Part shown: positions 14,251 to 35,751 of the stretch, piece after piece
Numbering within the stretch: position 1 is the first letter of the stretch
Layout of the letters: the number at the start of each line of letters is the position of its first letter
Virus record (IMG/VR): IMGVR_UViG_3300024239_000013
Coordinates: 248,001-312,000 of that record
Strand: one strand, 5' to 3'
Length of the DNA stretch: 64,000 bases
Notes under the pieces: generated by a model
The model's input: the letters and a program-made list of their open reading frames with translations, nothing else
What the model was told of the DNA's origin: nothing
Databases searched by the model: none
Translations under genes and position numbers: made by a program

Positions 14251-15207
14251 TTAATCCTTATTTTTAGAAACTTCCCTTATTTTTTTATCTGATATGAAGA
14301 AGCGTAAAAGTTTTTTTAATTTTTTTACATATTTTTCATCTTTCTTGCTTCTTTCTTGCTTTTCTTTTTCGTCCAAATCATTATATTTCCAATCTTCTCT
14401 ATTTTCAACTTCTAGGAAGTGGTTATATAATCTTTCTTCATCTTCACTATTTTCTATACCTAAAGATTTTTTAAGAAGATAGTTTAAATAATCGTTTTTA
14501 TTTATATCCTGGATATCTGATTCTATTTCCTCCTCTTCAAAACCATCTATATTAAAATTCAAGATTGTTTTACCTCTTTCGCTATTTATTGAAACTGAAG
14601 GATAAACGTCAGATTTTTTTCTAAATATTTCAAAATTACCTATGAATTGATCTGGAGATTTTTTTCTTATGTCCACCTGCATATCATTCATAAGAGATAT
14701 TTCATATTTCCCATCTTCGCATTTTTTCAAATCTTTAACTTCGCACGGAACTCCGAGTATTTCCATTATAAAATAAACATCATCCTTAACTGTGTCCAAT
14801 TGTCTAGTTTTATATGTCTCGTTATCTATTTTAGAATTAATGTAATCTTCTATAAAATCTTCTAGTATTTCTCTATTGGATCTTTTATTTAGCCATCTTT
14901 GATTAGGATCAATTTTTATAGAATATTGATTTTCCTGGATTTTATTAATCTTGATAGAATCTTTGGGCAGATTTATTTTTTTGTCCATTTTACCAAATCT
15001 ATTACAGAAAGAAATTGTAACGTTATTATCATCTTGTGAAGTAATCAATAACTTACCAACAGGGGGTATAGATTCATTCCCACTAAAATTTTCGGCGAAT
15101 ATTTCATATCCGTCTTCTATTATATTTTTAATTTCGTCAATTTCATAATTAAAAGACTCAGACTCCTTTATCATGAATTCTCTAAAATTTAGTATTCTGT
15201 TATTCAT
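14251..15207 (-). CDS. putative internal head protein (CTS-like leader)
   Basis: N-terminus MNNRILNFREFMIKES. Confidence 0.45.
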   Translation of the reverse strand: MNNRILNFREFMIKESESFNYEIDEIKNIIEDGYEIFAENFSGNESIPPVGKLLITSQDDNNVTISFCNRFGKMDKKINLPKDSIKINKIQENQYSIKIDPNQRWLNKRSNREILEDFIEDYINSKIDNETYKTRQLDTVKDDVYFIMEILGVPCEVKDLKKCEDGKYEISLMNDMQVDIRKKSPDQFIGNFEIFRKKSDVYPSVSINSERGKTILNFNIDGFEEEEIESDIQDINKNDYLNYLLKKSLGIENSEDEERLYNHFLEVENREDWKYNDLDEKEKQERSKKDEKYVKKLKKLLRFFISDKKIREVSKNKD

Positions 15208-15227
15208 ATTATCTACAGTCTAGCATA

Positions 15228-15677
15228 TTATTTTTCACCAAAATAAACAGTAATATCAAAGTTTCTTGGGTCTGTTGACTTATTCATATTTATTTCTAAT
15301 TTTTCAGGATAAGTTGGGATTGGTGAATCACTTACTTCATTTTTCAACTGGCTGTAGTCTATGGTTTTACCTGGAATTAAGTCTATATCAAATTCTTTAA
15401 TTCCATTTGGATAATCATCAACCTCAAATTCAAGCTCTATTGAATTTAAAGAGAATATGATTCCGTCGATTCCTCCCTTCTTTACAATTAGATCTACTGA
15501 ATACTCAATAAAAGCTTTACAGTCGTTTATTTCTTCATATTCTTCTGGTCTATCATATAAATCTATATCAACGTACTTTAACTCCCACCCAAAAGAATAG
15601 TCATTGATTCCGCCTCCTATTTTCTTTCCATTTGAATTGTTTTCTGAAAAAGCAGTATAATCGTATATTTTCGACAT
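15228..15677 (-). CDS. hypothetical acidic protein, possible head protein
   Basis: MSKIYDYTAFSEN leader; late motif at 15694. Confidence 0.45.
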   Translation of the reverse strand: MSKIYDYTAFSENNSNGKKIGGGINDYSFGWELKYVDIDLYDRPEEYEEINDCKAFIEYSVDLIVKKGGIDGIIFSLNSIELEFEVDDYPNGIKEFDIDLIPGKTIDYSQLKNEVSDSPIPTYPEKLEINMNKSTDPRNFDITVYFGEK

Positions 15678-15759
15678 TTTATTTTTTTTATTCTATATAT
15701 CCAAAGTAATATTTTTAGATTTAAAATATATAGATAGAGCATTTTAAAAAAATTGTATC

Positions 15760-16482
15760 ATGAAGCAAATAAGTCCAGTATGGTTTATAAAGAAACCACT
15801 AGATCAAGAACACAAGGAATACGTACTTTTAGATTATCTTAAAAAATTAAGTAGAAAATTAGATAAAGAAAATTGTTATTCCATACTAAGAGAAATCTCC
15901 AACAAAATAAAAATAATAAACGAATTTAAAGAATCTAAGATTATAAGTGAATTTCTAATAAATAATCTTAAGAAGGAAGATAAAAAAATAGCTAAAGAGT
16001 TTATATATGATAATTTAGACGAATCTGATAAATTATTATTGGAAAAAATATTAGAAAGTTCTCTAGAAATACTATACGAATATTTAGGTATTTGTTTAGA
16101 TATGATAAAAGAAGAAGAATCTAAAATAAGGATATTTAAAATAGACCCACCATCAGGAGTAGAAGATAGACAAAAATCTGGTATAGTAATAGTTAGAAAT
16201 ATGATAACAGATAGAATTATACCATATTATTGGCAGGATTCGGTTACTCTAAAAACAAAGGAAGGAGATAAAGAAATTTTTATATTAAAAAAAATTCATA
16301 TAAAAAACCAAACATTCTCCTTAAATTATGAGTACATTTATCACGAGATATTGGAAAAATTCAGTAAAAGTTCCAAGAGATTGTCCCCTGATTTACACAT
16401 AATTGAAATATATGAGAATTTTGAAGAAGACTCTGGTATTTATAAATTAGCAAAAGAAAAATTTATAGAAATGTTATCATAA
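15760..16482 (+). CDS. hypothetical protein (only convincing plus-strand gene)
   Basis: 240 aa ORF filling the gap between minus genes; ends at a bidirectional terminator. Confidence 0.7.
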   Translation: MKQISPVWFIKKPLDQEHKEYVLLDYLKKLSRKLDKENCYSILREISNKIKIINEFKESKIISEFLINNLKKEDKKIAKEFIYDNLDESDKLLLEKILESSLEILYEYLGICLDMIKEEESKIRIFKIDPPSGVEDRQKSGIVIVRNMITDRIIPYYWQDSVTLKTKEGDKEIFILKKIHIKNQTFSLNYEYIYHEILEKFSKSSKRLSPDLHIIEIYENFEEDSGIYKLAKEKFIEMLS

Positions 16483-16514
16483 AAAAAGAGAGCTAATTTT
16501 TAGCTCTCTTTTTT
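16482..16514. terminator. bidirectional intrinsic terminator
   Basis: aaaaaagagagctaa-ttt-ttagctctctttttt between convergent genes. Confidence 0.85.
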
Positions 16515-16515
16515 A

Positions 16516-16851
16516 TTAAAAATCATTTAGTTTTTTAATACTGAATTGTTCGGATTCACTAGTATCCATATTGAATATTCCACCTGATGCCGAAGCGTCA
16601 GCCATACCAGTAGTATCTCCTACATTCATTCTATATCCAGGTACTTCTATTTTAGACTGCTTACCAAAAACTGAATCAGCATAACCTACATAGTCGTAAG
16701 CATGTTGTCTAGTAATTTCAGATAGTCCAGTTTTTTCTGGTTGATGAGTTTGGTTTTCTTTTGAAAATGGTTTATATTCATTATCGTGGACTTTACCTAA
16801 AAATTGTTCATAGTCCAATATTTCTCTTTTTGCAACGTTTTGTTGGTTCAT
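16516..16851 (-). CDS. small putative head protein
   Basis: ILDYEQF near N-terminus and IKKLNDF at C-terminus; GATAAATA motif upstream. Confidence 0.45.
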   Translation of the reverse strand: MNQQNVAKREILDYEQFLGKVHDNEYKPFSKENQTHQPEKTGLSEITRQHAYDYVGYADSVFGKQSKIEVPGYRMNVGDTTGMADASASGGIFNMDTSESEQFSIKKLNDF

Positions 16852-16872
16852 GATCGATTTATTAATATTTTA

Positions 16873-17493
16873 TTATTTATCACTCTTACCAAAGAGTCCT
16901 TCCCAAAAAGATCCAAAAGAATTGGATTTTGTTTTTTCAGGATATTCTTTTACTAGCTGTTGCGATAGAGCATCCTTCATTTTTTCTTTACTTTCATCGT
17001 CAAGCTTATTGATAACATCTTTACCTACTGGTTCTTCTCCTAAAACTTTCAGAAAAAACTTAGTTAAATTTTCCTTACCCATTCTTTCCTGTAAACTTTC
17101 TCTTATTATGGAAGCTAACCATCCGTTAGGCATTATACCAAATGGAGTATAAAGGGAATCGAAACCTTTTCTTTGGATATATTCTTGTACGGCTTGAGCT
17201 AAACGAGGAGCTAAAAATTGAGCATTAGCATTTTTACCGGTTAATAATCCTGGGATTTCTTTAATCTCTATGGCGTCTACAACTTCTTGAATTATAGTAG
17301 AGGCTTCACTATTTTCAGAGATCCCTAATTTCTCCAGAAGCGAAGCTGCAAGTTTTTGTTTAACGGTTTTAACAAAACCTGCTCCTAATAAAGGAAGCAT
17401 CCTACCAAATATTGAGTTCATATCGGATATAAGATCTTCATTAACCTCATTTGAATCGTATGAAAAATCTTCAAAACTTTTTATCTTTGACAT
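16873..17493 (-). CDS. putative internal head protein
   Basis: MSKIKSFEDF...VNED leader; late motif at 17514. Confidence 0.5.
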   Translation of the reverse strand: MSKIKSFEDFSYDSNEVNEDLISDMNSIFGRMLPLLGAGFVKTVKQKLAASLLEKLGISENSEASTIIQEVVDAIEIKEIPGLLTGKNANAQFLAPRLAQAVQEYIQRKGFDSLYTPFGIMPNGWLASIIRESLQERMGKENLTKFFLKVLGEEPVGKDVINKLDDESKEKMKDALSQQLVKEYPEKTKSNSFGSFWEGLFGKSDK

Positions 17494-19537: not shown

Positions 19538-19541
19538 GTAT

Positions 19542-19636: not shown

Positions 19637-22120
19637 TTAATTTTTGAATTCCTTACATTTGAAAGGTGATGTTTGTGGTACCTGTTCGAATGTGTTTGCA
19701 TTCATTCTCTTTAGATGAGTTTTTATACTTGGATATATGTCTGCACCTATATAGTAACAGTTTTTGGCAAGAGATTTTCTTATAGGTGAATCTGGATTTA
19801 CGTCAGAAAGTATTCTAAGACCAGCTAAGTCTTCGCTAACTTCACCATTTTTATTAACTTTCCTCTCTGCTATCTTTTTGGAAGGTGCTGTTATTATGGT
19901 AGATTTTTCAAACCCTAATAAATTACCGGTATCTTCATCTTCATTAGTAGCTGAAAACATTTGGTCTCTATTTATTCTTTTAGCGGTAGCTTCACCCAAT
20001 AAATTATCATGAATCCATTTAACACAGCTGATGAATTTATTACCATCGAAAGATATTGCGTTTGCTATCATCACTAAGAAGTTATTTATAGCAACAAAAT
20101 CTTCTTTACCTAAATCTGGATTTTTTTCAGCAGTCTGTAATGCAATTTTAAATGCTTTTGCTATATCGCCTTTAAGGTCGTCATATTCTATGAAAGGTAT
20201 ACTCTTATTCTTAATAGAAGCACTCATCATTTCATAAGAAGAGCTTAGATCTAATTCATCATTCTGTGAATTTTCTCTGAGTAATGATTTTATACCTTCG
20301 TATCTATATTCAGGTCTAATCATACCAAAAGTTTTCCACCCTTTTAAATAATTCTCTATAAAATCAACCGAATCATCATTACCTAAATTTTTTATCCCTC
20401 TGGCATCTGCCCATTTATTCCAGTTACATGGATTTTTTAGAGAACTTGAAGATAGATTTAGATTATAAACACCTCCAGAAAAAAAGAAATATGAGTATTC
20501 TTCAATATCTTTTTCTTTCACTATCTTTTCTATACTGTCGTTCCAAGCTTTAATAAACTGTGGGCTATATGAAGATTTTAAAGATCCATCAGATTTAAGG
20601 AAATCCTCTTCCTCAACTTTTAGGTTATAAACAGACCTTAAATTTTTTGATAGGGTCTTAATTCCTGAAGAAGATCCTCCTCTACTTGGGGATTCGTAAG
20701 TTTCACCCTTATCTGAGACATTTCCTCCTAAATTTTTATATTGAGTATTAAGCTCTTTTTCGAAATCTGAATTATTTATGACTATTTTACTTTCATATAA
20801 CTTACTAAAATCATCTAGACTAACTACTGGACTATATCCCTCATTCATCTTGTTTCTTATAATATCCAAAGATCTTTGTATCGATTTCTTATCCTTATCA
20901 GAAACCCAATCAGAAGAAAGAATATCATCTAAAAGAACCTTATCTATTTCACCATTGTTGTTTTTATTTCCTATTATTTTCTGAAGAGTAGAAACTACAG
21001 CAGTTGTTGCTGGACCATATTTACCATTAGGACCGCCTTTAGATTTTATCAATTTAGAAGCAGAAGGAATCCCATTTACAAGTGCATTTTGAACGGCATA
21101 AATAAGTCCGCTTCCTTTTATTTTTTTATCCGAATCTGAGTCACCTCTTTTAAGTGGAAATACTGATTTAACTATCTGATTTTCTTCAGCTATTTTATCT
21201 TCTTTTATCTCCTTTGTTGTTATAGTATATTGTGCTTTAGCTCTAGTCAAAAGATCCAGTGCAGCATTAGTAAGATCTGTCACATCAGAATATGATGTAT
21301 AGACTTCTTCATCATCTTCTAAATTCTGTAAAGATCTATTAGCAGTTTGAATTAATGTTTTATTGAAATCCTCCTGGTATTTCTCAACTTGTTTCTCCAA
21401 CTCCTCTAGTGCTTTTCTGTCTCTTTCTCCAAATCCACCTCTGGTGGTATCCAAAACTTTTCTTTTCTCGTCAAGATCGATGAATGTTCTTTTCCAATCT
21501 CTACCATAACCATTTCTTTGGTCCTTTCCCTCTGCAGAAGTTATGAGATTATATAGAAGTTTTTTGAGATTCTCTATTCTTCCTTTATAACCGGTAAACA
21601 TGGATTCTAATATAGGATTACCCAGGAATAATTCAGATTCGTCTACTTTCTTACTTTTTAATTCCTTCTCTGCTTCTTTTGCTATATTATCTAAAGTGTT
21701 TTGTAATTTTACTGGAGACTTTCTAAAACTTTTTAAAATAACCTCGTCCTTATCTTTACCGATCTCAGAAGCTCTCTTTAGCGCTTCTGCAAGCTTTTTA
21801 AGAGCTTCCAAATAAAGTCTCTTAGTTTCAGCGTATTTAGAATTTAGCAAATCATTATCGTCTGCATAATCCAAAAGTTTAGCAGTTAACTCTTTAACAT
21901 TCTTAGAATTACTAATATCTGAAAGTTTTACTCTCATAACATCAGGATTTCTATCTCTGGCAGGAGCCAAATCAAAAGTCAATATTTTGAAAGCATCTAG
22001 AGCATTATCAGATATCTTATTTAAAAGTGCATCTACTTTTTCGTTCTCCAAAATTACTTCATAGTGCTCATTAAATAAAGATTTTGCTACTGGATTATTT
22101 AAGTATGGATTTTTTCTCAT
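19637..22120 (-). CDS. large coiled-coil virion protein with peptidoglycan-binding-like domain
   Basis: LKRGDS..IYAVQNAL..NGKYGPATTAVVSTLQK resembles PG_binding_1; several (I/L/M)xE sites. Confidence 0.5.
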   Translation of the reverse strand: MRKNPYLNNPVAKSLFNEHYEVILENEKVDALLNKISDNALDAFKILTFDLAPARDRNPDVMRVKLSDISNSKNVKELTAKLLDYADDNDLLNSKYAETKRLYLEALKKLAEALKRASEIGKDKDEVILKSFRKSPVKLQNTLDNIAKEAEKELKSKKVDESELFLGNPILESMFTGYKGRIENLKKLLYNLITSAEGKDQRNGYGRDWKRTFIDLDEKRKVLDTTRGGFGERDRKALEELEKQVEKYQEDFNKTLIQTANRSLQNLEDDEEVYTSYSDVTDLTNAALDLLTRAKAQYTITTKEIKEDKIAEENQIVKSVFPLKRGDSDSDKKIKGSGLIYAVQNALVNGIPSASKLIKSKGGPNGKYGPATTAVVSTLQKIIGNKNNNGEIDKVLLDDILSSDWVSDKDKKSIQRSLDIIRNKMNEGYSPVVSLDDFSKLYESKIVINNSDFEKELNTQYKNLGGNVSDKGETYESPSRGGSSSGIKTLSKNLRSVYNLKVEEEDFLKSDGSLKSSYSPQFIKAWNDSIEKIVKEKDIEEYSYFFFSGGVYNLNLSSSSLKNPCNWNKWADARGIKNLGNDDSVDFIENYLKGWKTFGMIRPEYRYEGIKSLLRENSQNDELDLSSSYEMMSASIKNKSIPFIEYDDLKGDIAKAFKIALQTAEKNPDLGKEDFVAINNFLVMIANAISFDGNKFISCVKWIHDNLLGEATAKRINRDQMFSATNEDEDTGNLLGFEKSTIITAPSKKIAERKVNKNGEVSEDLAGLRILSDVNPDSPIRKSLAKNCYYIGADIYPSIKTHLKRMNANTFEQVPQTSPFKCKEFKN

Positions 22121-22135: not shown

Positions 22136-22405
22136 TTAGTATATATTAGTATTTCCTGCATCTGGATTTGCTCTAATTTCCGCAGCTAAAGTTTTAAGAA
22201 GATTTGATATCTGTAAGTAAACAACTGATTGTTTATTCAGAGATTCAATTTCAGAATTAACATTTCCTGGTTTTTTAGCTTTTTTAATTGCAGATATCTC
22301 AGAGAATTTTTTCGAAAGATCCAATTTCGTTTGTTCCATCTTAGATATTTCTGCTTCATTCATTTCAGAATATCCACCCATTTTAAATTCATTAAAACTA
22401 ATCAT
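22136..22405 (-). CDS. putative internal head protein
   Basis: MISFNEF...MNEA leader. Confidence 0.5.
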   Translation of the reverse strand: MISFNEFKMGGYSEMNEAEISKMEQTKLDLSKKFSEISAIKKAKKPGNVNSEIESLNKQSVVYLQISNLLKTLAAEIRANPDAGNTNIY

Positions 22406-23288
22406 GATTTCTTGCTACTGTTATTTTAGATCTGAGGTCTCTTATTTGACCCATATATTTTTCTCTAATTTCCTTTATTCTCTTAGCTGCTGATTCTCTA
22501 GTTTCTCCGTTCCCGGTTTTATTTGAAATTTCATTATTAAGAGCATCCCTTTCCAAATCCATCTGAACGTATAAAGAATCTCTTTCCTTTATAAGAGAGG
22601 AAGTTAGTTTTTTGATTTGTTCCTTGGTAAGAGATGAAATTTCTTTCGTAAACTCTGATATTGACATTGATGTATATCGATCGATAGAGCTATCATTTAA
22701 ACCAGAAGATTTCTTTTCGTCCTCCTTTGATTTAACTTCTCTACTAACCAAATCACCATAGTTTTTTTTGAATTCCAGATCTCTTTCCTTTGCTTTAAGA
22801 ACTGCCTTTTTGTATTTGTCATAAAGATCCTTAGATGTGGAAGAATCTGCTAATTCTTTAGACTTCTTATACATTTCCTCTGCAACTTCAGCATCGACTT
22901 TAGCTTTATTCACCTCCCAGAAATTTTGCAATTTAATGCTATCACTAATTACATCTTTAACAACCTTCATTAAATGATCTACTTTTTTAGCGTGAACCTT
23001 TTTAGAATTAGCTAAAACAGCATTATTTCTTTGGATATATCTTTCGGCTTTTTTTGCTTCTGCTGGGTCATTTTTAGATTGGGCTCTTTCCAATTCTAGT
23101 TTATCTATTTCAATTAAAACTTCCTCCCATTCATCAACAAATTCCAATTCTAGATTTTTATAGTCATTTAGGAGTCCTTGAAGTTTACTCATAGCTCCAC
23201 CAAAATTAGCACTAAACCAATCTTTAACTTTATCAAAAAAGTTTGCTTCATTTAGGGTTTCCCATTCTTTAAATTTAAGAGTCTTCAT
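22398..23288 (-). CDS. putative internal head protein, coiled-coil
   Basis: MKTLKFKEWETLNEA leader. Confidence 0.5.
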   Translation of the reverse strand: MKTLKFKEWETLNEANFFDKVKDWFSANFGGAMSKLQGLLNDYKNLELEFVDEWEEVLIEIDKLELERAQSKNDPAEAKKAERYIQRNNAVLANSKKVHAKKVDHLMKVVKDVISDSIKLQNFWEVNKAKVDAEVAEEMYKKSKELADSSTSKDLYDKYKKAVLKAKERDLEFKKNYGDLVSREVKSKEDEKKSSGLNDSSIDRYTSMSISEFTKEISSLTKEQIKKLTSSLIKERDSLYVQMDLERDALNNEISNKTGNGETRESAAKRIKEIREKYMGQIRDLRSKITVARNHD

Positions 23289-23289
23289 T

Positions 23290-24438
23290 TTAATCTATTA
23301 ATTTTGATTTAGCTTTTTTAATTCTTCCTACGTTAGCTGGAGAATTCTTATCTTTTTCTATACTAGCAAAAAGATCAGATACCACCTTTTTAGTTCCTGA
23401 ATTAGCATCATCTCCGTTAATAATCTCCTGATTTATTTTATTTGTTAACTTAGTAAAATCAGATTCTTTGGATAAAACCTTAGTTATCTCTGATTCAGTT
23501 TTACCTAGACCTCTAAATAGATGTAAGAGATTTTCCTTTGCATCTAAAGTAGAGCTCAGTTCAAGAAGATCCATTTTAAAAGTCTCTATGTACTTTAGTG
23601 ATATTGTTTTAGGGCTCTTAGCCATTTTAGATTCTAAAACATTCAATTTTCTCTCAATATCAGATCTTAAATCTGCTATTTCTTTTTCTAATTCATTTTT
23701 TCTTTGTATTAGGTCCTTACCCTTTCTACTCGAGATTTTTTTCTTCTCCTTTTCTAAATCTACAGATAGATCATTTTTAGGGGCTCTGTCCTCTAAATCT
23801 CTCTCAGTTTTAGCTTTTATATCATTAGCCTTTTCCTCTGCATCTCTCTTTGCATCTTCTATTTTTTCTTTATACTTTCTAATTTCAGTTTGGTCTTTAG
23901 ATCTTTCTGAAGCTAATTTATATTCTAGTTCTGCTATAGCAATTTCATCCTCTGCATATCCTGCAGCTAAATATTGTTTTCTTCTAGAATTATCATCAGT
24001 AAGTCTATAAGCAACATCTTTTGATTTTTTAATCTTTAATTTTTGAGCTTTCACATAAGCTTCAAATTCTTTAATTTTAGAATCTCTTTCTTTCTCTAAA
24101 GAATCTATTTTTTCTTTATTTCCGGATCTAGATAAGCTATCTATTTGAATATCTATTTTTTCTATATTCTTTTCAAACTCGTCTTTTTTTTCTATTAAAT
24201 CTAATTCTAAATCAAGAATAATTTTTCTAGCCTGATCAATCATACTTATTCTTGACATAGATCCAAGGAAAAATTTAGATAAGCTATTCTTTAAATTATT
24301 CATAAGATTCCCTTCATTAACCGAATGTATAGGTTCAACTCTTTCTAGGGAATTAAGCTCATTCAACAATTCAGGACTTACACTTTCCATCAAATCCCCA
24401 TATTTTTTGAATTCACTAAAAGATGGTATATTTTTCAT
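23290..24438 (-). CDS. putative internal head protein, coiled-coil
   Basis: MKNIPSFSEF..LMES..VNEG leader; late motif at 24465. Confidence 0.5.
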   Translation of the reverse strand: MKNIPSFSEFKKYGDLMESVSPELLNELNSLERVEPIHSVNEGNLMNNLKNSLSKFFLGSMSRISMIDQARKIILDLELDLIEKKDEFEKNIEKIDIQIDSLSRSGNKEKIDSLEKERDSKIKEFEAYVKAQKLKIKKSKDVAYRLTDDNSRRKQYLAAGYAEDEIAIAELEYKLASERSKDQTEIRKYKEKIEDAKRDAEEKANDIKAKTERDLEDRAPKNDLSVDLEKEKKKISSRKGKDLIQRKNELEKEIADLRSDIERKLNVLESKMAKSPKTISLKYIETFKMDLLELSSTLDAKENLLHLFRGLGKTESEITKVLSKESDFTKLTNKINQEIINGDDANSGTKKVVSDLFASIEKDKNSPANVGRIKKAKSKLID

Positions 24439-26329: not shown

Positions 26330-28042
26330 TTATGCTAGACCTCCTGCAGGTACATTAACAAAGAATGTTAAGTACATAGTTTCAGGTAACATACCAGCTT
26401 CAACTAGAGCGTATCTAGATTTAACTGCTATTTTAGGTGACATAGTACCTTCAGAGATTGTCTGAATTGACTCTGCCATCATATAAGGCATGAATTTAAG
26501 ACCTGGTTCGTCGTCTCCACCTTTTCTACCAACTAATACTCTAGTATCTCCGTAGCTCATGTTTTGATCTACATAAACAGTCATACCAGCAAGAGATCCT
26601 ACCGGATATAATGTACCGTTATTTTGAGTTAGAGTGTTAGAGAAAGGAGCAAAAGTGAATTGAGAGATGTCTTGAAGTGCACTTGCAACTGCAGCGTTTG
26701 TTACGATGAAGTTAGCTGGACCTCTTCTACCTCTGTTAGCTACTACGTTAGCAGCTGCAAGAATTCTAGAGAATAATCTTCTTTGTAAAGTTGATAAGTT
26801 CTCGTAAGAAGTTGATGCAGGACCTGCTGGAATAGCCATAGCTACACCTTGATCTGATTTATTAACGTAAGCTGCTGTTGTACCAGTAGATCCGTTAAGT
26901 ACTAAGTTTAAGTTCAAGTTTTGGTTTTCAACGTTGTTGAATTGAACGTGGTTAGACCAACCTAGAGCAAATGCTCTTGAAAGGATGTGCTTGTTAATTG
27001 CTTGAGAAACCTCGTTAACTAATGCATTCTCGATCATTGAAATAACGTCGATACCGAATTGTTTGTTAAGGTCTTGGATTTGCTCAGTTGTAACTGAAGC
27101 AGCAACTTGGAAAGTCTCAGCTTCTACGAACTTAGTGAAAGTAGAAAGACCCATTGAGTTATAGTAAGTAGATTCAGCTACTCCTCTTAACATTGGGTTA
27201 TAAGTTTTAGTACCATCAACATAAGGTCCTTGCCAATCAGCATCGTTATTGAAACCAGCACCAGAGAATCCTTGGATGTGATCTTCTAAAGCTTTAACTA
27301 ATTGAGCAACGTATCCGTTAACTGAAGTAGAAGTACCAGTGTACATACCGCTAGTACCAACTTGTACTGAAGTACCGTTGACGATAGAAGCTATTGTATA
27401 GTTTTGAGTAACTCCAGCAACCTCGAAAATTGGGAAACCGTCAATTCTTGAAAGTCCAACGAAAGTTAAAGTTAAAGTACCACCGTTAACTACAGTGTAA
27501 GAAGTTCCTACTGTAAAAGTACCAGCTGTAGCACCAGTAGCACCAGCAGCAGATCCTTGATAAACAGGGAATTTAATCATTGATGGAGCTTTTGCTAAAG
27601 CATCTGCAGCAGAAGCATCTGAGCCAGTAGCACCAGCTAATTTACCACCTGCATATACATAATCTAGATAAGATAAGATACCAGTTGGTCCTGACATAGG
27701 AATAACAGGAACGATATCAAACCCGATTGTTTTAGCAGCTACTTGAATAGCTAAAGGTAACAATGATGGGAATTTATCTCCTGAACCTTGCCAAGATGCG
27801 TTATAGAAACCAGCATTAGCACCAGTTGATAATCCACCTGCTCCTGGGAATGATGGAGGGGTTACGTTACCCATACCATTTACAACACCTAAAGAGTTAT
27901 ATGCACCCGCAGATTCGTTTAATGAGTGATAGTGACAATATTTAGTTAACCACTCTTTTTTGCTTGAGTCAGTGATTCCTGCTTTACTCTCGATGATAGG
28001 AGACCAGGTTTCATAGATTTCTTGTTCGTTAATCAATTTCAT
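26330..28042 (-). CDS. gp23: major capsid protein, T4 gp23-like
   Basis: DIVPVIPMSGPTG, TEQIQDL, EVSQAINK, RGPANFIV, FMPY, PKIAVKSRYAL; strong codon bias; SLNES processing site. Confidence 0.92.
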   Translation of the reverse strand: MKLINEQEIYETWSPIIESKAGITDSSKKEWLTKYCHYHSLNESAGAYNSLGVVNGMGNVTPPSFPGAGGLSTGANAGFYNASWQGSGDKFPSLLPLAIQVAAKTIGFDIVPVIPMSGPTGILSYLDYVYAGGKLAGATGSDASAADALAKAPSMIKFPVYQGSAAGATGATAGTFTVGTSYTVVNGGTLTLTFVGLSRIDGFPIFEVAGVTQNYTIASIVNGTSVQVGTSGMYTGTSTSVNGYVAQLVKALEDHIQGFSGAGFNNDADWQGPYVDGTKTYNPMLRGVAESTYYNSMGLSTFTKFVEAETFQVAASVTTEQIQDLNKQFGIDVISMIENALVNEVSQAINKHILSRAFALGWSNHVQFNNVENQNLNLNLVLNGSTGTTAAYVNKSDQGVAMAIPAGPASTSYENLSTLQRRLFSRILAAANVVANRGRRGPANFIVTNAAVASALQDISQFTFAPFSNTLTQNNGTLYPVGSLAGMTVYVDQNMSYGDTRVLVGRKGGDDEPGLKFMPYMMAESIQTISEGTMSPKIAVKSRYALVEAGMLPETMYLTFFVNVPAGGLA

Positions 28043-28071: not shown

Positions 28072-30060
28072 TTACCTTTTTGAGAATTTTTGCTCTAGTG
28101 CTGAAGCTATATAATTCATATAATCATTTGAATAAGCTTTTGGAGCATCGTCTTGAGCTAGATTTTCATTCTCGTTTAGTTTTTGAACACCAACTGGTTT
28201 AGTCCCTAGCTGTCTAGTAGACCAGAAGTTTTTGATCTGGTAAGGTGTATCTAATCTATAGAAGTTACTTTGAGCAATGATAGATTGCTGGTGGCCTTCG
28301 TTAAGAGATTCCCAAACCTGAACATATTCTTCAGGCATCTCGTCGATAAACTTAAGTCCTGTTTTGTTAGTGTTCTCGTTAAGAGTTTCTTCTGCCTTCT
28401 GTGTGTCGGCTGGTGCTTCTACAAATCTAGAAGCTTCGTTTATATTTGATTCAGTTTTTTGTGTTTTAACTGATTCTATCAAATTGTCAATTTTTGTTGA
28501 AAGATTATCATAATCTCCAGCAAATCCAGATTCATTTAAACCTGCTTTAGCTGAAAGATCTACGCTTTCTCTTAGTGATTCTTCTTTTTGCATAATTCCG
28601 TTATTAACGCTTTCTGCTATATATTCAGTATAAGATATTGATCTTTTAACTTTTTCTGCTAAATATTCAGAATAATCCAATCCTCTATTAAGATTTTCAG
28701 CTAAATAATCAGAATATTCGATTGATTTGTTTAAGTTTTCTGCTAAGTACTCAGTATATTCAATTCCATCATTTAGTTTTTCTGCTACGTATTCAGTGTA
28801 GGCAATACCTTTATCTAAGTTTTCTGCAATATATTCAGTGTAAGCAATACCTTTATCTACATTTTCTGCAAGATATTCAGCGTAGGCAATACCTTTATCT
28901 ACATTTTCTGCAAGATATTCAGAATATTGGATATTCTGATCAACTTTCTCTGCAAGATACTTAGAATATTCAATGGATTTATCTACATTTTCAGCAACAT
29001 ACTCAGAATAAGAAATGGATTTATCTACATTTTCAGCTAAATACTTAGAATAAGAAATATTCTTATCAAGATTTTCAGCTAAATATTTGCTGTAGCTGAT
29101 ACTAGAATCTAAATTCTCTGCAAGATATTCTCCGTACTTGATAGCATTATCTAAGTTTTCAGCAAGATATTCAGAATATTTTTCTAATTTTTTTACTCTT
29201 TCTTCTAGTGCTGAAGTATTAGAAGATTCATCAGATTCTGTCAATTTTTCTCTTTGGTCTTTAATTTCTGCTATTGAACTTTTCATAGCATCCATCTCTT
29301 TTTTTAAGAAAATCGAATATCGATTAAGTTCTTCTGCAGTAACAAGTTCTTTATTCTCCATGAGGATTGTTTTATTTTTGTCTATTTTTGATACGAGTTT
29401 GTTAAATTCTTCGTTATTTTCAACTTTATATATCTTTACTGAGGATTCATTTTCTAGGCCTAATGATTCATTCACACAAATTAAATCAGATAATACACTA
29501 GAATTTCTCATTTCGAAAAATTCTTCAAATGTATAACCTGCACTTTCATAAACTCTTTCAAGCTGTGCGTCTTGAAATCCAGGATCTGCAACTAGGTCGT
29601 AAGTAAATATCTTTTTAATTTGAACTTTCTTATCGTTACCTACCGCTCCTGCTGCTCTAGATGATATAGATAAAGGAACTCCAGCATCTACTAATTTCTT
29701 AGCAATCTGACCCGCTGGTGTATCTAGAAGTCTTACTTTAATTCTAATTTCTCTAGTATTCTTATCGTAAGTAAGATCCGTAATTATGTGGGATATGTTT
29801 TTTAAAGAAACGTCAAACTTTTCTGGGTGGTCTAATTCTCCAACCAGTCTTTTTTGAGCTATCTTATCTTTAAGATAATTTAAATGTGGAAGATATTCAG
29901 CTTCTTCATATATCCTATTGTTGTTGTTCTCTTTTCCGAAAACAGCAGCAATACCCTCAAGTACATATTCTTCAGAATCTGTTTTTTTAGATTCCAAAAC
30001 CGTTTCCTGTCTTTCTAGAATAAAAACTAAATCTTCGTTCAATTTTTGAGTTGTCGGCAT
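28072..30060 (-). CDS. gp21: prohead protease (gp21-like) fused to scaffold/core domain
   Basis: NNNNRIY, GELDHP, LLDTPAG, ISSRAAG, TYDLVADPGF, then 14 x 14-aa repeats. Confidence 0.88.
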   Translation of the reverse strand: MPTTQKLNEDLVFILERQETVLESKKTDSEEYVLEGIAAVFGKENNNNRIYEEAEYLPHLNYLKDKIAQKRLVGELDHPEKFDVSLKNISHIITDLTYDKNTREIRIKVRLLDTPAGQIAKKLVDAGVPLSISSRAAGAVGNDKKVQIKKIFTYDLVADPGFQDAQLERVYESAGYTFEEFFEMRNSSVLSDLICVNESLGLENESSVKIYKVENNEEFNKLVSKIDKNKTILMENKELVTAEELNRYSIFLKKEMDAMKSSIAEIKDQREKLTESDESSNTSALEERVKKLEKYSEYLAENLDNAIKYGEYLAENLDSSISYSKYLAENLDKNISYSKYLAENVDKSISYSEYVAENVDKSIEYSKYLAEKVDQNIQYSEYLAENVDKGIAYAEYLAENVDKGIAYTEYIAENLDKGIAYTEYVAEKLNDGIEYTEYLAENLNKSIEYSDYLAENLNRGLDYSEYLAEKVKRSISYTEYIAESVNNGIMQKEESLRESVDLSAKAGLNESGFAGDYDNLSTKIDNLIESVKTQKTESNINEASRFVEAPADTQKAEETLNENTNKTGLKFIDEMPEEYVQVWESLNEGHQQSIIAQSNFYRLDTPYQIKNFWSTRQLGTKPVGVQKLNENENLAQDDAPKAYSNDYMNYIASALEQKFSKR
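28610..29180 (-). repeat. 42-bp (14-aa) coding tandem repeat, 14 copies of Y-x-E-Y-L-A-E-N-L-D-K-x-I-x
   Basis: Counted directly in the translation. Confidence 0.92.
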
Positions 30061-30128: not shown

Positions 30129-32711
30129 TTATTCATATTTTATTCTATCTTCAACTTCAGTCGTAAACTTTTTAGCTATTTGGAAAGCTTCACCGTCGGT
30201 CACTCTATATTTTCTAACTCTATCCCCAGGGGATGCAAATTTATTTTTAAGTTTAACTTCTACTATATCTCCTCTGTTATCCTGTAGTGCTTTTGCGAAA
30301 GATATTGCCTTCCATCCTTCTACGCCTAGAACTTCTTTTTCCTTATCTGATAAGAACTTATCTATTAAGTTTATTCCACCAGTTACTGAATTGTCTCTTA
30401 TTATCGTAGAACTTCTTCTATCCTTAATTTTAACATCATTTGGATCAACCTTGATATAATAATCATCAGAAACCTTACCTTCTACTTTATCACCAGAAAC
30501 TTCTGGTTTTTTTTCATCGGTTTTTGGATTTACTACTGTTACGATATCAGATTCTCTTCCGTCTTTTTTATTATCAAGTTTGGCTTTTTTAAATTGATAT
30601 ACACCTCTCTTAGGATTGTTTATATCCTCATTTATGGTATTTGTCTGAACCGAAATCGATTCACCTCTTTTGGCTCCATAGTCACTTGGATCTATAGTAA
30701 AGTTAGTGAATTTTCCAGTTTTATATTTTCTTAATTCTGGATCTGCGTATTCTCTATCAGTAACCCAATATATTGCGACTTTTGCTGGTGTTGATAAATC
30801 GGCTGAAGATAGACTAACAATATCTCCTGATTTTTTATCCTCATTTATACCATAAATTCTATCGCTAAACGAAGAGAAGCTTGTAATGACATCATTTTCA
30901 TTAACAAGGTCCATGTATACTAAGCCACCGTCTTCTGATTCATTCTTTTTAGAACCATTTCCTGAATCTTCTTTAACTTCCTTAGGTATAAATATTTTAT
31001 CGATGTCATCTTTAGAAGTTGATCTTAATTCGTCATTATTCATAAGTCTACCAACAACATTTATTATATCACCTTCATCGTTCTGATAATAAAATTCATA
31101 ATTTTCTGGTGCACTATCATCTGAAATTATAAGTTGATCTGAAGAACTGTCCAAAGCTGTTTTAAAAACATCCCAATCACACATACCCTTAAATTTAAAG
31201 ATAGTTGCTAATTTAGATATTCCGTCAACATAAGATATTTTAAAATCAAGGTCTTCGTTATCGAAAACTCTAGCTATAGTATTTAGAGCACCTTCTTGGT
31301 CATTAACAATGTCGTTATTGTCCAATGCAATTAAAACAAGATCATGTTCTGCAAGTTGTTTCTGTGCTTCTTTAGAATTTATCTGAGTTAATATAAGTAT
31401 GGAGTAATTGTTCTTATCCGCTATTTTAATAAATTCTGCTGTTGTTCTCGTTTCATTGTTAAAAAGGAAACTAGTAACAGTGCCCCATCCTCCTCCTGCT
31501 GGCTGAGACCAACAAACTGTAATAGGTACTCCGATTGGGATTTTTTTAGAATCCATTTCCCTCTGTGCAAATGATTTAACCTCATTATATTTTGGAGCTT
31601 GCTTATCACTAAACCAATTCCAAGCTGATCCTATTACGTCAGTTAAAATAAGTATTTCACCAACAAAAGGAATAAGTTTAGCTCCTCCTTGAGCTGCTCC
31701 TCTTGTAAATCCTTTAGAAAATGCTTTTAAAGCACCCTTTGCTCCAACCTTACCTAATGTATAAGCTGATTTTGCTCCCTTTGCTCCTCTAACTATCGAA
31801 GATCCAATAGTTCTGGTGTTTTTAAGTAAAGCAACATCTTTAGCTCCTCCCCATAGACTTTTTATAGCAGAACCACCATAATTTTTTATCTTATCCATTA
31901 CACCAGGGGGAACCTGAGTTGCATTTTTTGGATTTATTCTAAATCCCGATATACTCTTAAGTAAAAGTGCTCCAGATAATGCTCCACCCGCAGCTTTTAA
32001 TGCTCCAAAAAGAGTGATACTAACCCCACCCATTACTGCTAATATTGATGCATCTTGTATAATTTTTTGAGTAAGACCTTCAGCAGTTTCATTTTCTGGA
32101 ATTTGACCACCGGGATACATCTCATTAACATCAAGAAGCATTATCTTTGATGCAGATTGAGATTTAGTGAAAGATTTCATTTTTACCGCCTTTAAGGTTT
32201 CCTGTATATCTTCTCCAGTATCTGGATCATTTCCACAGATAAAAATTGCCTTTTCCTTTCCATCTAATATTTCACCAGGACTTAAAGTTTCGTCTATTTT
32301 ACCTTCACTCTTTAATTTATTGTAAGCAAAATGGAATTTTATGGCTTCCCTAAATTTAGGATCATCATCAGCAGTATTAGTATCTTCATTCAATTTAGAA
32401 AAATTAGAAAAAGAAATTACTCCGTTATCTAAATCGTTCTCATCTAACGAAACGTTTATATCGTCTAAATTAAAATTATATTTTTCCTTGATGTATTCTG
32501 CAACATTAGAATATTTACTCATATCTTCAGAATCAGCGACCCAAGATCTAGGATTTTTATCAAGCCATTTTTGAAAATCCTCAGATTTTGCCCACCATTG
32601 AAAATCTTCAAAAGATGCACTTTCTGCTCCTTTCATATCAAGGGGAACTGTTAAGAATGGGAAATCGTCTCCGTTTTTATATTCTGTTTTTTTAGGTAGT
32701 AGTATAATCAT
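30129..32711 (-). CDS. large putative head/ejection protein with Gly/Ala-rich hydrophobic segments
   Basis: Internal ISFSNFSKLNED and ITSFSSF..INED motifs; ASILAVMGGVSITLFGAL and LIPFVGEILIL segments. Confidence 0.45.
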   Translation of the reverse strand: MIILLPKKTEYKNGDDFPFLTVPLDMKGAESASFEDFQWWAKSEDFQKWLDKNPRSWVADSEDMSKYSNVAEYIKEKYNFNLDDINVSLDENDLDNGVISFSNFSKLNEDTNTADDDPKFREAIKFHFAYNKLKSEGKIDETLSPGEILDGKEKAIFICGNDPDTGEDIQETLKAVKMKSFTKSQSASKIMLLDVNEMYPGGQIPENETAEGLTQKIIQDASILAVMGGVSITLFGALKAAGGALSGALLLKSISGFRINPKNATQVPPGVMDKIKNYGGSAIKSLWGGAKDVALLKNTRTIGSSIVRGAKGAKSAYTLGKVGAKGALKAFSKGFTRGAAQGGAKLIPFVGEILILTDVIGSAWNWFSDKQAPKYNEVKSFAQREMDSKKIPIGVPITVCWSQPAGGGWGTVTSFLFNNETRTTAEFIKIADKNNYSILILTQINSKEAQKQLAEHDLVLIALDNNDIVNDQEGALNTIARVFDNEDLDFKISYVDGISKLATIFKFKGMCDWDVFKTALDSSSDQLIISDDSAPENYEFYYQNDEGDIINVVGRLMNNDELRSTSKDDIDKIFIPKEVKEDSGNGSKKNESEDGGLVYMDLVNENDVITSFSSFSDRIYGINEDKKSGDIVSLSSADLSTPAKVAIYWVTDREYADPELRKYKTGKFTNFTIDPSDYGAKRGESISVQTNTINEDINNPKRGVYQFKKAKLDNKKDGRESDIVTVVNPKTDEKKPEVSGDKVEGKVSDDYYIKVDPNDVKIKDRRSSTIIRDNSVTGGINLIDKFLSDKEKEVLGVEGWKAISFAKALQDNRGDIVEVKLKNKFASPGDRVRKYRVTDGEAFQIAKKFTTEVEDRIKYE

Positions 32712-32713: not shown

Positions 32714-33514
32714 CTATTTTTCTGTGTAAATTTTATCGTATGATTTTGAAATAATATTTATCAATTTTTCTATATATCCTTCATTTCTAAGCTTTTTAAA
32801 TGCTAGGTTTCCTATAGACATTTCTCCTCCTTTTTCTAACCCCTCTCTTCTCATTTTAAATATTTTTTTCTTCATCGTAAGACATCTCTTATAAAGTTGT
32901 CTAGCATTTGAAGGTATCATCGAGTCAACAAGAAGTCTTGAATGTAATTGTTCTATGTCAGAAACTATGGAATTATATTTCTTTTCAACATCTCTCTCGT
33001 CTATTGAAGGTGGATTATATGATGGAGATTTTATCCATTCATTTTTTAAAAGAGAAAAGAGAGCAGATGCTGTATGTGGTTCTGATTCGTCCTGTACGTA
33101 AAGTTCAACGTCATAACCTCTAATAACGATATCATGTCTAAGATTCCACATGAATCTAATCCCACCTATGGCTTTTTTTAGTATTTGAGGATTGTCATCA
33201 TCAATACCTTTAAGGTTAACTATAATATGAACGTCAAGATCAGAAAAATCTGTGTAGTTGTAATTTGATAAAGATCCAGTTAATTGTATATCAACAATAT
33301 CCTTTTGTTTTAATACATCTTCATAATTAGAAAAAAATTCATTGGCTATCCTAAGTAGCTTTCTTCTAACTCTCTGGTCAAATACCCATTTATCCTTCTT
33401 CTTAGTCCAAAAAACTGGAGCCAACTCATCATGGTAGAAAGAATTTACCTTTCCTTCATTTAATGAATTGCTTCTTTTATTTAAAAATCTATTAAACTCT
33501 AATAATCTATCCAC
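32714..33514 (-). CDS. Pol-beta superfamily nucleotidyltransferase with CTS-like leader
   Basis: TGSLSNYNYTDFSDLDVHI (GS..DxD) and VELYVQD; GTG start; MDRLLEFNRF..LNEG. Confidence 0.75.
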   Translation of the reverse strand: MDRLLEFNRFLNKRSNSLNEGKVNSFYHDELAPVFWTKKKDKWVFDQRVRRKLLRIANEFFSNYEDVLKQKDIVDIQLTGSLSNYNYTDFSDLDVHIIVNLKGIDDDNPQILKKAIGGIRFMWNLRHDIVIRGYDVELYVQDESEPHTASALFSLLKNEWIKSPSYNPPSIDERDVEKKYNSIVSDIEQLHSRLLVDSMIPSNARQLYKRCLTMKKKIFKMRREGLEKGGEMSIGNLAFKKLRNEGYIEKLINIISKSYDKIYTEK

Positions 33515-34274: not shown

Positions 34275-34291
34275 AAAAAATTATTTTTAAG

Positions 34292-34299
34292 CAAATTTA
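34292..34299 (-). promoter_or_regulatory. Bacteroidota-type -7 element TAAATTTG (exonuclease)
   Basis: Matches TAnnTTTG; 17 nt before ATG. Confidence 0.55.
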
Positions 34300-34322
34300 A
34301 TAAAAATTCCCGAGAATAAAAA

Positions 34323-35225
34323 TTATTTTTTTAAAATTTTATTTATTATAGTAGGAGGAAGAGCTTTATAGGTTTTCATATATTTAATATATGATAGTTC
34401 TCTTTTAGGTGAATCTATTATAACATCACAATCTAAACCAAAAGTAGGTATTCTTCTGCTTAAAAATTGTACTGGATTTGGTGAAATAGAAATTCCGTTT
34501 TCATTTATTTCCTCAGATTCGGAATGTATATAAAAAGGTTTTTGACCGGGTCTCCATGTGGAAGCAGCTAAGAATAGTGCTTCTCTTATCGAGAGTCCAC
34601 CGTCATTAAATTGATGAGGAAGAGATCTGAAACAAAGAGGAATTCCAGATTCATAATATATTCCAGAAAGAAGATCAGTGATTGAAAATAAACTTGGCTT
34701 ATCGTCATTTGTTACACATAACTTCTGTCTAGTTCTATCAGATAACAATGAAAGTCTCTCGCAAAACAATTTCATCGTTTGTTTTCTGTTGCCATAAGCA
34801 GATCCAATTCTAACTATTATAGATGGATAATTAATGCCGAGAAGGTCTAGTATAGAACTCAATCGGTTTAAAAATAATACACTATTTTCTTTTACCGATT
34901 CTATTTGACTTCCTAAGAAATGTTCCTTCCCTACAAAAAAACAAATCTTTAGAGAATTCTTGTTAATTAATGAATTTATAGAATTTATTCTTGACGATAT
35001 CTCAGGATCCTCTTCCTCTATAACATCCAGGAAAAAAGATTCATGAAAATCAATTTCACCAACATCTAAACAAACAATATTTGCATGGATCCGTGAATTT
35101 ATTACACAAACATCCAATATTAACGAAAGTATATCCTTATAAGAGGTTATTGTAAAGTCCCCCTTTATATGTTCTCTTGGAATTCCAAGATATGAAATAT
35201 TCGGTTGATTATTTCCAGATAACAT
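34323..35225 (-). CDS. uvsE: UV damage endonuclease UvsE-like (divergent)
   Basis: IGSAYGNRK, TNDDK, HQFNDG, AASTW..PFYIHSE. Confidence 0.6.
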   Translation of the reverse strand: MLSGNNQPNISYLGIPREHIKGDFTITSYKDILSLILDVCVINSRIHANIVCLDVGEIDFHESFFLDVIEEEDPEISSRINSINSLINKNSLKICFFVGKEHFLGSQIESVKENSVLFLNRLSSILDLLGINYPSIIVRIGSAYGNRKQTMKLFCERLSLLSDRTRQKLCVTNDDKPSLFSITDLLSGIYYESGIPLCFRSLPHQFNDGGLSIREALFLAASTWRPGQKPFYIHSESEEINENGISISPNPVQFLSRRIPTFGLDCDVIIDSPKRELSYIKYMKTYKALPPTIINKILKK

Positions 35226-35237
35226 TTATTTTTTACT

Positions 35238-35266
35238 ATTGTATCTGAATAACAGTAAATAGTTTC
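35238..35266 (-). promoter_or_regulatory. middle-type promoter GAAAC-N18-TACAAT (uvsE)
   Basis: Read directly. Confidence 0.65.
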
Positions 35267-35271
35267 GCTAG

Positions 35272-35751
35272 TTATCCACCAGTAGTTTCCAAGCCAAGTT
35301 CGTTTGAGCTATATACAGTATCTGAATTGTAAGCAGATCCTGGTATTTCGTTATTTTTATATTTTGAAAGGGTTTCCATGTTACCGTGATCCCCACCTTC
35401 TGCAAATTTAACGGTGTCACTTTTAACCTCAATAACGCTTTCTGTTTTTTTACCGTCAGTATAAACTTGTATAAAATATCTATATTGCTGATTATCAGGA
35501 TTTCTAAAAGCTCTAACTATTACACCAATAACCTTCTTCTTTGAATTCAATGGCTGAGCAGTGATAACATCACCCAATTGAAATTGTGAACCCTTAACAG
35601 TTCTATCCACATTAGGATCTGGGCCAACGGAAACCGAAAGATCACTGAATGGCTTATAATTTATTTTAAATACACCATTGGCTCCGCCATATCCATAGCT
35701 GTCTCCAAATGCATTGCTATCAAATTCATTTATTGAGATTATGTGTTTCAT
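35272..35751 (-). CDS. hypothetical protein with CTS-like leader
   Basis: MKHIISINEF. Confidence 0.5.
   Translation of the reverse strand: MKHIISINEFDSNAFGDSYGYGGANGVFKINYKPFSDLSVSVGPDPNVDRTVKGSQFQLGDVITAQPLNSKKKVIGVIVRAFRNPDNQQYRYFIQVYTDGKKTESVIEVKSDTVKFAEGGDHGNMETLSKYKNNEIPGSAYNSDTVYSSNELGLETTGG

Follow-up and report, generated by a model that had tools for sequence, protein, structure and literature searches.

A T4-like capsid-targeting leader on some 44 proteins of an uncultivated 319-kb phage: a candidate expanded system for loading and maturing prohead cargo

The window described here is a 64-kb stretch (positions 248,001 to 312,000) of a single virus record, IMGVR_UViG_3300024239_000013, which is 319,334 bp long. 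It contains a T4-type head module and, beside it, part of a gene family whose products begin with a short leader resembling the capsid-targeting sequence of bacteriophage T4. The genome has a GC content of 31% and 447 open reading frames (ORFs) of at least 50 aa, and the minus strand carries 86% of its genes. ORFs cover 93% of the DNA under code 11, so that the genome calls for no alternative code. The leader has the form h-x-x-[FY]-x-x-[FW] (h, hydrophobic), usually followed by [LIVMF]-N-E, and is found in ~44 of the 447 ORFs (~1–5 expected), which make up 10% of coding capacity. A first-pass annotation of the window quoted eight such N-termini, all of which are present on the minus strand at the coordinates given below. 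It estimated the family at about 10 members, with most of their genes flanking the capsid operon; the genome-wide scan places 8 of the ~44 in the window and 36 elsewhere, so most do not. Coordinates are window positions and features lie on the minus strand unless stated otherwise.

Judged by matches to the Pfam families Gp23, Portal_T4 and Peptidase_S77 (the last above cut-off), the head genes are T4-like, encoding a capsid protein of the gp23 family, two portals of the gp20 family and a protease of the gp21 family (S77). The major capsid protein (MCP; 26330..28042; Gp23, E 1e-41) aligns to residues 6–169 of T4 gp23, and its N-terminus is the homologue of the gp23 propeptide. The predicted MCP propeptide (residues 1–43; nt 27914–28042) ends at SLNE-43/S (here and below a slash separates the Glu from the residue that follows), the last Glu before the conserved body; a second site is LINE-6. 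The prohead protease (662 aa; 28072..30060; Peptidase_S77, phrog_207) has its S77 domain at residues 34–145 (nt 29626–29961), which contains GELDHP and ISSRAAG; in a profile comparison with T4 gp21 (hhalign; prob 91%, E 1e-6) these align with GELNHP and VSSRGLG, respectively. The protease carries KLNE-9/D (nt 30034–30042) where T4 gp21 has LLIE-9. Both the MCP and the protease site had been pointed out in the first-pass annotation, and both are conserved in ~76 orthologues, SLNE-43 being invariant in MCP relatives. The two portal genes (41775..43442, 555 aa; 43447..45036, 529 aa; Portal_T4, E 9e-64) are tandem paralogues; adjacent portal duplicates are unusual, and either could form the portal vertex.

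Megablast of the head region against deposited phages gave no match. By capsid protein, the deposited phages that come closest, at ~45% identity, are the uncultured 462-kb LR756500 and the Lak megaphages; phages of Tenacibaculum, Flavobacterium, and Chryseobacterium follow. In the 45%-identical LR756500 capsid protein, HELYE stands where the MCP has HSLNE (compared by eye). IMG/VR holds at least 179 closer relatives; 80 of these, with capsid proteins 72–91% identical, were kept as the comparative set of related loci, and their flanks were fetched to 10 kb. The ribosomal protein S21 family was not found in the genome, so that the bS21 gene by which the freshwater bS21 phage clades are defined (PMC9723584) is missing. 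DNA nearly identical to window positions 22100–28060 is present in subsurface, river, and wastewater metagenomes, and wastewater metatranscriptome contigs, which carry no information on direction, start sites or timing, cover the MCP gene at >99% identity; these matches indicate that close relatives are widespread and probably active.

The leader is enriched at N-termini far above its internal frequency. In 47 of the 447 ORFs the pattern [ILVM]xx[FY]xx[FW] begins no later than residue 9 (5.3 expected from its internal frequency), with a sharp peak in start position (residue 4 in 24 ORFs, residue 5 in 8), and a position matrix built on non-redundant members retrieves 42–44 ORFs against 0.2–3 in matched internal control windows. 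[ILVMF]NE follows within 20 residues in 29 of the 47 (2.4% expected), and h-N-E is the sole h-x-E triplet strongly over-represented in the first 30 residues of ORFs (52 versus 19). Among the 44 leader ORFs, 41 have an h-x-E within 40 residues and 30 an h-N-E. The contiguous heptad [FY]-x-x-[FW]-[ILV]-x-E stands at the N-terminus of 22 ORFs (2.9 expected) and, with a spacer, of ~44; genome-wide there are 76 heptads of the form Ar-x-x-Ar-h-x-E (Ar, aromatic), of which 22 are N-terminal, 14 lie in an extension of the protease and 40 are elsewhere. The same leader pattern was found in only 1 of 117 ORFs from similarly AT-rich regions of PTm1, LR756500, MaF61, and T4, which rules out composition as its cause.

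The predicted propeptides are 12–42 residues long, with a hydrophobic P3 residue (L, I, V, M, F), and their key positions are those of the T4 sequence: aromatics equivalent to residues 4 and 7, a hydrophobic residue equivalent to 8 and the Glu equivalent to 10. Of 21 leader h-N-E sites, 10 have S, A or G directly after the predicted cut (P1′), versus 18 of 102 internal ones (p 0.008). Between the aromatic pair and the cleavage site lie 0–30 variable residues, so the pair must do something besides defining the cut, and targeting fits. The first-pass annotation described the site as (L/I/V/M)NE; the Asn at P2 is not fixed, orthologues having h-x-E with N, L, F or S in that place. The leader consensus, M-K-N-I-K-S-F-E-N-F-I-N-E, is amphipathic and charged. 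Sec, Tat, and lipoprotein signal peptides, which are marked by a hydrophobic core of ~10–15 residues behind a basic N-region and by a lipobox Cys or twin-Arg, were considered and rejected, since the leaders have neither a hydrophobic stretch nor Cys or RR. Where F, N, E and h are conserved, synonymous codons are chosen much as elsewhere in the genome (TTT/TTC 6:3, AAT/AAC 5:5, GAA/GAG 8:2), and the conserved hydrophobic residue is encoded by five different codons; this genome-like usage indicates selection on the peptide, not the DNA.

The eight leader genes of the window lie on both sides of the capsid and protease genes. The 318-aa protein (14251..15207; leader residues 1–15, nt 15163–15207, with I5, F8, F11, and IKE-15/S) has no Pfam, PHROG or NCBIfam match and no apparent relatives, although the latter may be due simply to flanks having been fetched to 10 kb. 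The 149-aa protein (15228..15677) has leader residues 1–12 with I4, Y7, F10, and FSE-12/N; the octamer GATATATA, discussed below, lies 17 nt upstream of its gene (15694–15701). The 206-aa protein (16873..17493; leader residues 1–19, with I4, F7, F10, and VNE-19/D) also follows a copy of the octamer (17514–17521), and 46 related loci contain orthologues of it. Beside the MCP gene lie genes for an 89-aa protein (22136..22405; leader from residue 2, with I2, F4, F7, then MNE-17/A), a highly charged 296-aa protein (22398..23288; L4, F6, W9, then LNE-14/A) and a highly charged 382-aa protein (23290..24438; I4, F7, F10, with LME-18, LNE-27, and a clade-conserved VNE-42/G), the last with the octamer at 24465–24472. 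The 266-aa protein (32714..33514; GTG start) has L4, F7, F10, then LNE-20/G; its mature part is nucleotidyltransferase-like (weak NTP_transf_2 match; phrog_36119) and its octamer is at 33533–33540. The weakest member is a 159-aa protein with a leader-like start (35272..35751; I4, I7, F10, and INE-9), which has orthologues in 56 loci.

Three larger proteins of the window carry sites of the same type away from a canonical leader. The 860-aa protein (30129..32711) has two internal leader copies with conserved aromatics and Glu in linkers: residues 98–109 (nt 32385–32420), ending LNE-109/D, and residues 609–624 (nt 30840–30905 including the preceding VNE-605), ending INE-624/D. In an alignment of its family the conserved columns V98, S100, F101, F104, and E109, and E605, I609, F612, F615, and E624, stand within variable, gapped linkers (column conservation 0.93 for F101, 1.0 for E109, 0.90 for E605, 0.90 for F612, and 1.0 for F615). 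An AlphaFold2 (AF2) model of the protein (predicted local distance difference test, pLDDT, 62) shows both copies as isolated short helices (residues 101–108 and 612–621) in low-confidence linkers between folded domains. From the alignment and this model, it is probably a polyprotein cut into several pieces at accessible sites. Foldseek of the model against the PDB gave nothing better than E 0.17, and Protein Atlas leads were below noise level. Internal copies had also been claimed in the 827-aa protein (19637..22120); those of the 860-aa protein are conserved, whereas the 827-aa protein has only LFNE-18/H and MNE-427, with no canonical leader and no convincing leader copy. It has no family match, its Protein Atlas leads fall below the noise threshold, and its two sites make it a possible protease substrate. 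The third is a 795-aa protein (46776..49163; GATATATA at 49186–49193) with 7 h-N-E sites, the first being SINE-43/H, a count second only to that of the protease; it has no family match and may, from these sites, be a further protease substrate and another processed head protein.

The protease has a C-terminal extension with heptad repeats that had been missed in the first-pass annotation. Residues ~289–486 (28603..29196) consist of 14 tandem 14-residue repeats (Tandem Repeats Finder period, 42 nt) with the consensus I-x-Y-[ST]-[EK]-Y-[LIV]-A-E-N-[LV]-D-K-x, and each unit holds the leader heptad Ar-x-x-Ar-h-x-E as Y-x-x-Y-L-A-E, nearly the T4 string YQEFIAE. Beyond the repeats, five h-N-E sites (28171..28539) follow at residues 510, 542, 562, 588, and 630, with P1′ residues S, A, N, G, and N, and the protease is the genome's richest ORF in h-N-E sites (7; Poisson p 2e-4 before correction). 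The repeat copies number 12–14, at 14-residue spacing, in nearly all of the 76 orthologues. The protease-scaffold family is very large (3,969 at E <1e-3); of its 150 best representatives 125 have at least one heptad, many with 5–16, and the contigs of more distant representatives were too short for use. An IMG/VR scan with P0141 gave no match. By its repeats and sites, the extension appears to be the scaffolding part of the core, which the protease would cut after each L-A-E. It shows a local likeness to gp22 (E-[WY]-L-A-E-N ... D-K-G-I) that is anecdotal.

The leader is maintained in orthologues at 30–80% identity. Across the related loci, the aromatic pair persists in the 382-, 296-, and 89-aa orthologues, as does an h-x-E with a small or acidic residue after it, and the stretch in between drifts; orthologues of the 89-aa protein retain F-x-x-F and h-x-E-A/E. 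For the 266-aa protein, 109 of 120 database homologues keep the leader, with an h-x-E always a few residues before the start of the conserved PFYHDEL body. A strict DNA pattern for F-x-x-F-h-N-E has 15 matches in each of two ~430-kb relatives (0–2 in reversed controls), 7 in a third relative and control-level counts in two others; in one 430-kb relative ~10 of the 15 are canonical N-termini, including those of the kinase and ATP-grasp orthologues. Nothing further was gained from clustering the leader ORFs of the relatives' flanks.

Downstream of the leader, members have little in common. In an all-against-all BLAST comparison the mature parts are unrelated except for a leucine-rich repeat (LRR) array, one SLT pair and a small pair at genome positions 75135/112987, which includes a likely false positive; members thus share the leader alone. 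Recognisable bodies comprise a CHAP peptidase, two SLT lytic transglycosylases, a RimK-type ATP-grasp enzyme, an adenylate kinase (ADK) and a DUF5661 protein, and the known domains all lie downstream of the leader. Residue 24–25 of the ADK aligns with residue 2–3 of solved cellular kinases, so that leader plus an 8-residue linker forms a clean 22-residue add-on. The best PHROG match of one SLT protein is phrog_342, 'internal virion protein with endolysin domain' (weak, E 8e-5); other lysin candidates in the genome have no leaders. The LRR array (genome 38629–50802, plus strand, outside the window) consists of 12 tandem paralogues of 231–320 aa with 21-residue, Cys-containing repeats, variable in number, and a conserved C-terminal domain, and at least 10 of the 12 begin with MKRI.NYKTFINE/S. 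By profile the array resembles the LRR domains of internalin-J (E 1e-25) and of SspH/IpaH proteins, whose ligase domain it lacks. The first-pass annotation had proposed a large set of uncharacterised cargo; the unrelated bodies and the upstream motif common to leader and structural genes support this in part, although some window members may be core or scaffold components. A second multigene family outside the window (genome 108578–116792, minus strand; at least 6 paralogues of 104–161 aa starting MEKEF[IV]PYE.AL.LKELGFDE) is unrelated to the leader family.

Many leader genes share an upstream element as well. No other 8-mer is as strongly enriched upstream of ORFs as GATATATA: of its 55 genomic copies, 38 lie within 60 nt of a start (18.6-fold). 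In the window the octamer occurs 17 times (7.8 expected), always on the coding strand, and 0 of 100 shuffles reached that count. Copies precede the 149-, 206-, 382-, and 266-aa leader genes by 6–60 nt, and others are found upstream of the protease, 860-aa, 795-aa, second portal, and candidate tail-sheath genes. The earlier statement that most leader genes follow late motifs therefore stands in part: the strict octamer precedes 4 of the 8 window members, and the genes of two others (296 and 89 aa) immediately follow that of the 382-aa protein. A relaxed form is found upstream of 29 of 44 leader genes and 81 of 403 others (odds ratio 7.7, p 9e-10; in relatives, odds ratio 4.7). No −35-like element was found with GATATATA; T4 late promoters likewise have none. 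The window encodes a T4 gp55-type late sigma factor (162 aa; 46164..46652; tblastn with T4 gp55, E 5e-5; phrog_234 late sigma, E 3e-14) and, separately, a 202-aa sigma factor with regions 2 and 4 (extracytoplasmic function-like; 53452–54060). From these sequence features it is proposed that the leader genes are expressed late from GATATATA-type promoters.

Other genes interrupt or accompany the head module. Between the capsid gene and the 382-aa gene lies an HNH-type homing endonuclease gene (578 aa; 24503–26239; phrog_3339, E 6e-103), which looks like a recent mobile insertion because a homologue occurs in only 4 of the 80 related loci (fetched flanks); T4 and PTm1 likewise have homing endonucleases directly after their capsid genes. 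Genes for a glutamine-hydrolysing-type asparagine synthase (468 aa; 17547–18953) and a P-loop kinase-like protein (198 aa; 18956–19552) stand among the head genes and are kept there in more than 50 related loci. The region's only plus-strand gene (15760–16482; 240 aa, no family match) runs opposite to the surrounding late genes and is kept at the same position in 42 related loci. Two adjacent paralogues of 191 and 184 aa (57620–58195 and 58213–58767), with near-identical N-termini (MAGL.HF.NS), adjoin a 1117-aa gene (58812–62165); from position and size only, they are candidate tail-tube and tail-sheath genes.

The leader is best understood against T4, whose capsid-targeting sequence has been dissected by suppressor analysis: targeting depends on residues 4 and 7 and processing on residues 8 and 10, and gp21 cuts after L/I-x-E (PMC9026906). 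T4 ipII and ipIII begin MKTYQEFIAE (verified in the T4 genome; the string is also given in PMC8442874), which is h-x-x-Ar-x-x-Ar-h-x-E with the initiator Met as the first h, and further T4 sites are gp23 FGSFLTE-65/A and gp24 MAKINE-6. The comparison with T4 drawn in the first-pass annotation is therefore sound, in that the head module is T4-type and the leader core is that of the IPII/IPIII leader, with the same functional positions. As in T4 IPI, IPII, IPIII, and Alt, a short N-terminal propeptide has aromatics three apart, then hydrophobic-x-Glu, and is joined to unrelated bodies; the gp23, gp20, and gp21 head genes are homologous to those of T4 and, as there, the protease has a site at residue 9 and the MCP propeptide ends in the same type of site. 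Unlike T4, with 3–4 tagged genes, this genome has ~44; its leader has three extra residues (M-K-x) before the core, prefers Asn at P2 and places the cleavage site up to ~30 residues past the aromatic pair; the candidate cargo includes sizeable enzymes and the LRR array; and internal leader copies occur in the 860-aa protein. The T4 core (gp22, gp67, gp68) is cut into short peptides after h-x-E and gp21 trims itself, as we infer for this phage, whose h-A-E sites resemble those of gp22; unlike the T4 core, the scaffold-like part is fused to the protease and built of 14 tandem repeats with the cargo-leader heptad.

The jumbo phages phiKZ, 201phi2-1, and SPN3US likewise have heads with dozens of different proteins; a gp21-related protease cuts these after Glu, and ejection is their presumed fate. 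Their sites are S/A/G-x-E, their propeptides mostly exceed 100 residues and no short leader is shared (PMC9026906, PMC5694885). Membership of this inner-body/ejection class was rejected here, since P3 is hydrophobic and propeptides have 12–42 residues; the leaders are short and T4-like, and the head genes are much closer to T4. The ejection proteins of T7 (gp16) and P22, internal virion proteins of which some have lytic transglycosylase domains, carry wall-degrading domains in the head and leave it ahead of the DNA, as the SLT protein with the weak phrog_342 match may do; they are large and essential and have no leader-plus-protease loading, whereas the SLT and CHAP proteins here are small (249–267 aa) and leader-tagged.

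Taken with the T4 precedent, these features probably represent a greatly expanded T4-type system for loading and maturing prohead cargo, in which cargo would dock, be cleaved after Glu and be ejected. Late in infection, GATATATA-type promoters, read with the encoded gp55-like sigma factor, would yield ~40 proteins, each beginning with a 10–13-residue amphipathic leader, M-K-x-I-K-x-[FY]-x-x-F-[ILV]-N-E. Its two aromatics would dock the protein, as in T4, onto an assembling scaffolding core built by the protease–scaffold fusion, whose extension would form a ~200-residue helix of 14 tandem Y-x-x-Y-L-A-E units. Once the gp23-type shell had closed, the gp21-type serine protease would cut after the Glu of h-x-E, removing the 43-residue capsid propeptide, trimming itself (LNE-9 and the five C-terminal sites), chopping the scaffold repeats and freeing cargo from leaders. 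By analogy with T4, the cargo would then stay in the head with the DNA and be ejected into the next host; it would comprise CHAP and SLT wall hydrolases (both suited to breaching the wall), the adenylate kinase, the ATP-grasp enzyme, the nucleotidyltransferase-like protein, ~12 LRR proteins and many proteins of no recognised kind. More tentatively, the cargo leaders may be single-unit mimics of the scaffold repeats, so that one unit, N-terminal or internal, would co-assemble with the helical core and be released by the same cut that dismantles the scaffold. A complex prediction for protease residues 286–490 with the leader-bearing adenylate kinase scored 0.00; run without controls, it counts neither way.

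Several observations weigh against this expanded loading system. Cleavage and packaging are drawn by analogy with T4, and to our knowledge 44 tagged genes exceeds anything known for a short capsid-targeting sequence. The leader and repeats were sought in the sampled head regions around the capsid genes of PTm1, MaF61, and LR756500, and neither was found; the known cultured relatives, PTm1 and MaF61, therefore offer no experimental system that would support the proposal. A nearby h-x-E is missing in 3 of 44 leader genes, and 15 of 44 have no upstream motif within 70 nt, the loose form of which is barely enriched in the window (77 versus 58.6). Depletion of h-N-E was sought inside mature cargo and none was seen (8 sites, 8 expected). 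Two or three of the 44 members appear to be false positives, one being a membrane protein at genome 112987, and the presence of housekeeping-like enzymes (adenylate kinase, ATP-grasp) in the set has no obvious rationale for delivery. For the scaffold, AF2 predicts two long helices in the repeat region at low confidence (pLDDT 49 for the protease–scaffold, used for 'helical' alone), and homology of the extension to gp22 was rejected, since the protease–scaffold alignment, compared by profile with T4 gp22, gave nothing significant (prob 1.6%).

The rival explanation with most to commend it, though an unlikely one, accepts the leader and its cleavage sites as real and makes most tagged proteins core or scaffold components, or assembly factors, that are degraded or expelled in maturation. 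The 382-, 296-, and 89-aa proteins by the MCP gene, which are charged, clade-conserved and free of any enzymatic domain, may indeed be core or scaffold components rather than delivered cargo; the 382-aa propeptide has several sites, and T4 core proteins gp22, gp67, and gp68 are likewise cut by gp21. In many other tagged proteins, however, a short leader is simply joined to a whole enzyme or binding module (ADK, RimK-type ATP-grasp, CHAP, SLT, and the LRR array), which fits cargo over scaffold, and internal h-N-E sites are not enriched in these proteins, so that degradation into fragments is not predicted. Somewhat less probable still is a capsid-unrelated role for the N-terminal motif—as an interaction or oligomerisation helix, a tag for regulated proteolysis, or an aid to translation or folding of late proteins—with a convergent likeness to T4. 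The 36 of 44 leader genes far from the head module, the favouring of K, N, I, F, and E by AT-rich codons and the lack of the motif in sampled regions of PTm1, LR756500, and MaF61, which have the same head module, would all suit it. It leaves unexplained, however, why the same heptad or h-N-E occurs at the MCP propeptide boundary, at protease residue 9 and 14 times in the protease extension, and why the conserved positions are those functionally mapped in T4, in a genome with a T4-homologous head module; composition is excluded by the 1/117 control and the low internal rate.

Spread of a promoter-plus-leader cassette at the DNA level, by duplication or recombination and without selection on the peptide, is largely refuted. 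Such a process would account for the 12-gene LRR array, in which upstream and leader DNA are nearly identical, and T-even internal-protein loci do combine conserved leaders with swapped bodies (PMC3012670). Outside the array, however, leader DNA varies freely at synonymous sites while the residues are kept, orthologues at 30–80% identity retain the leader, and the internal copies have no promoters. The probability of a chance or compositional artefact is negligible: although 31% GC enriches K, N, I, F, Y, and E, the counts (47 versus 5.3 with a positional peak; 42 versus 0.2–0.8 for the matrix; 1/117 in AT-rich controls) and the retention of the pattern in relatives exclude it.

No description of such a system was found in the searchable literature. 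Because the leader matches the T4 capsid-loading signal, likely injected cargo becomes readable from sequence: if the tags work as in T4, the proteins injected by an uncultivated huge phage could be listed from its genome, whereas identifying those of giant phages otherwise requires virion proteomics and genetics. The candidate list is unusual: besides wall hydrolases that would serve entry, enzymes of the nucleotide and peptide-ligase kinds and the nucleotidyltransferase-like protein, it has a 12-member LRR family that resembles a diversifying set of host-protein binders and ~25 proteins without an assigned function; those listed are natural candidates for factors of early host take-over or counter-defence. 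The heptad common to leaders and scaffold repeats offers a concrete candidate answer to an old T4 question—what the capsid-targeting sequence binds—and, if cargo leaders do mimic scaffold units, this would explain recognition in T4-type targeting and imply for this clade an injected proteome of more than 40 proteins, the largest such set known for any phage. The leader also suggests a portable tag for loading foreign proteins into the large capsids of Bacteroidota phages.

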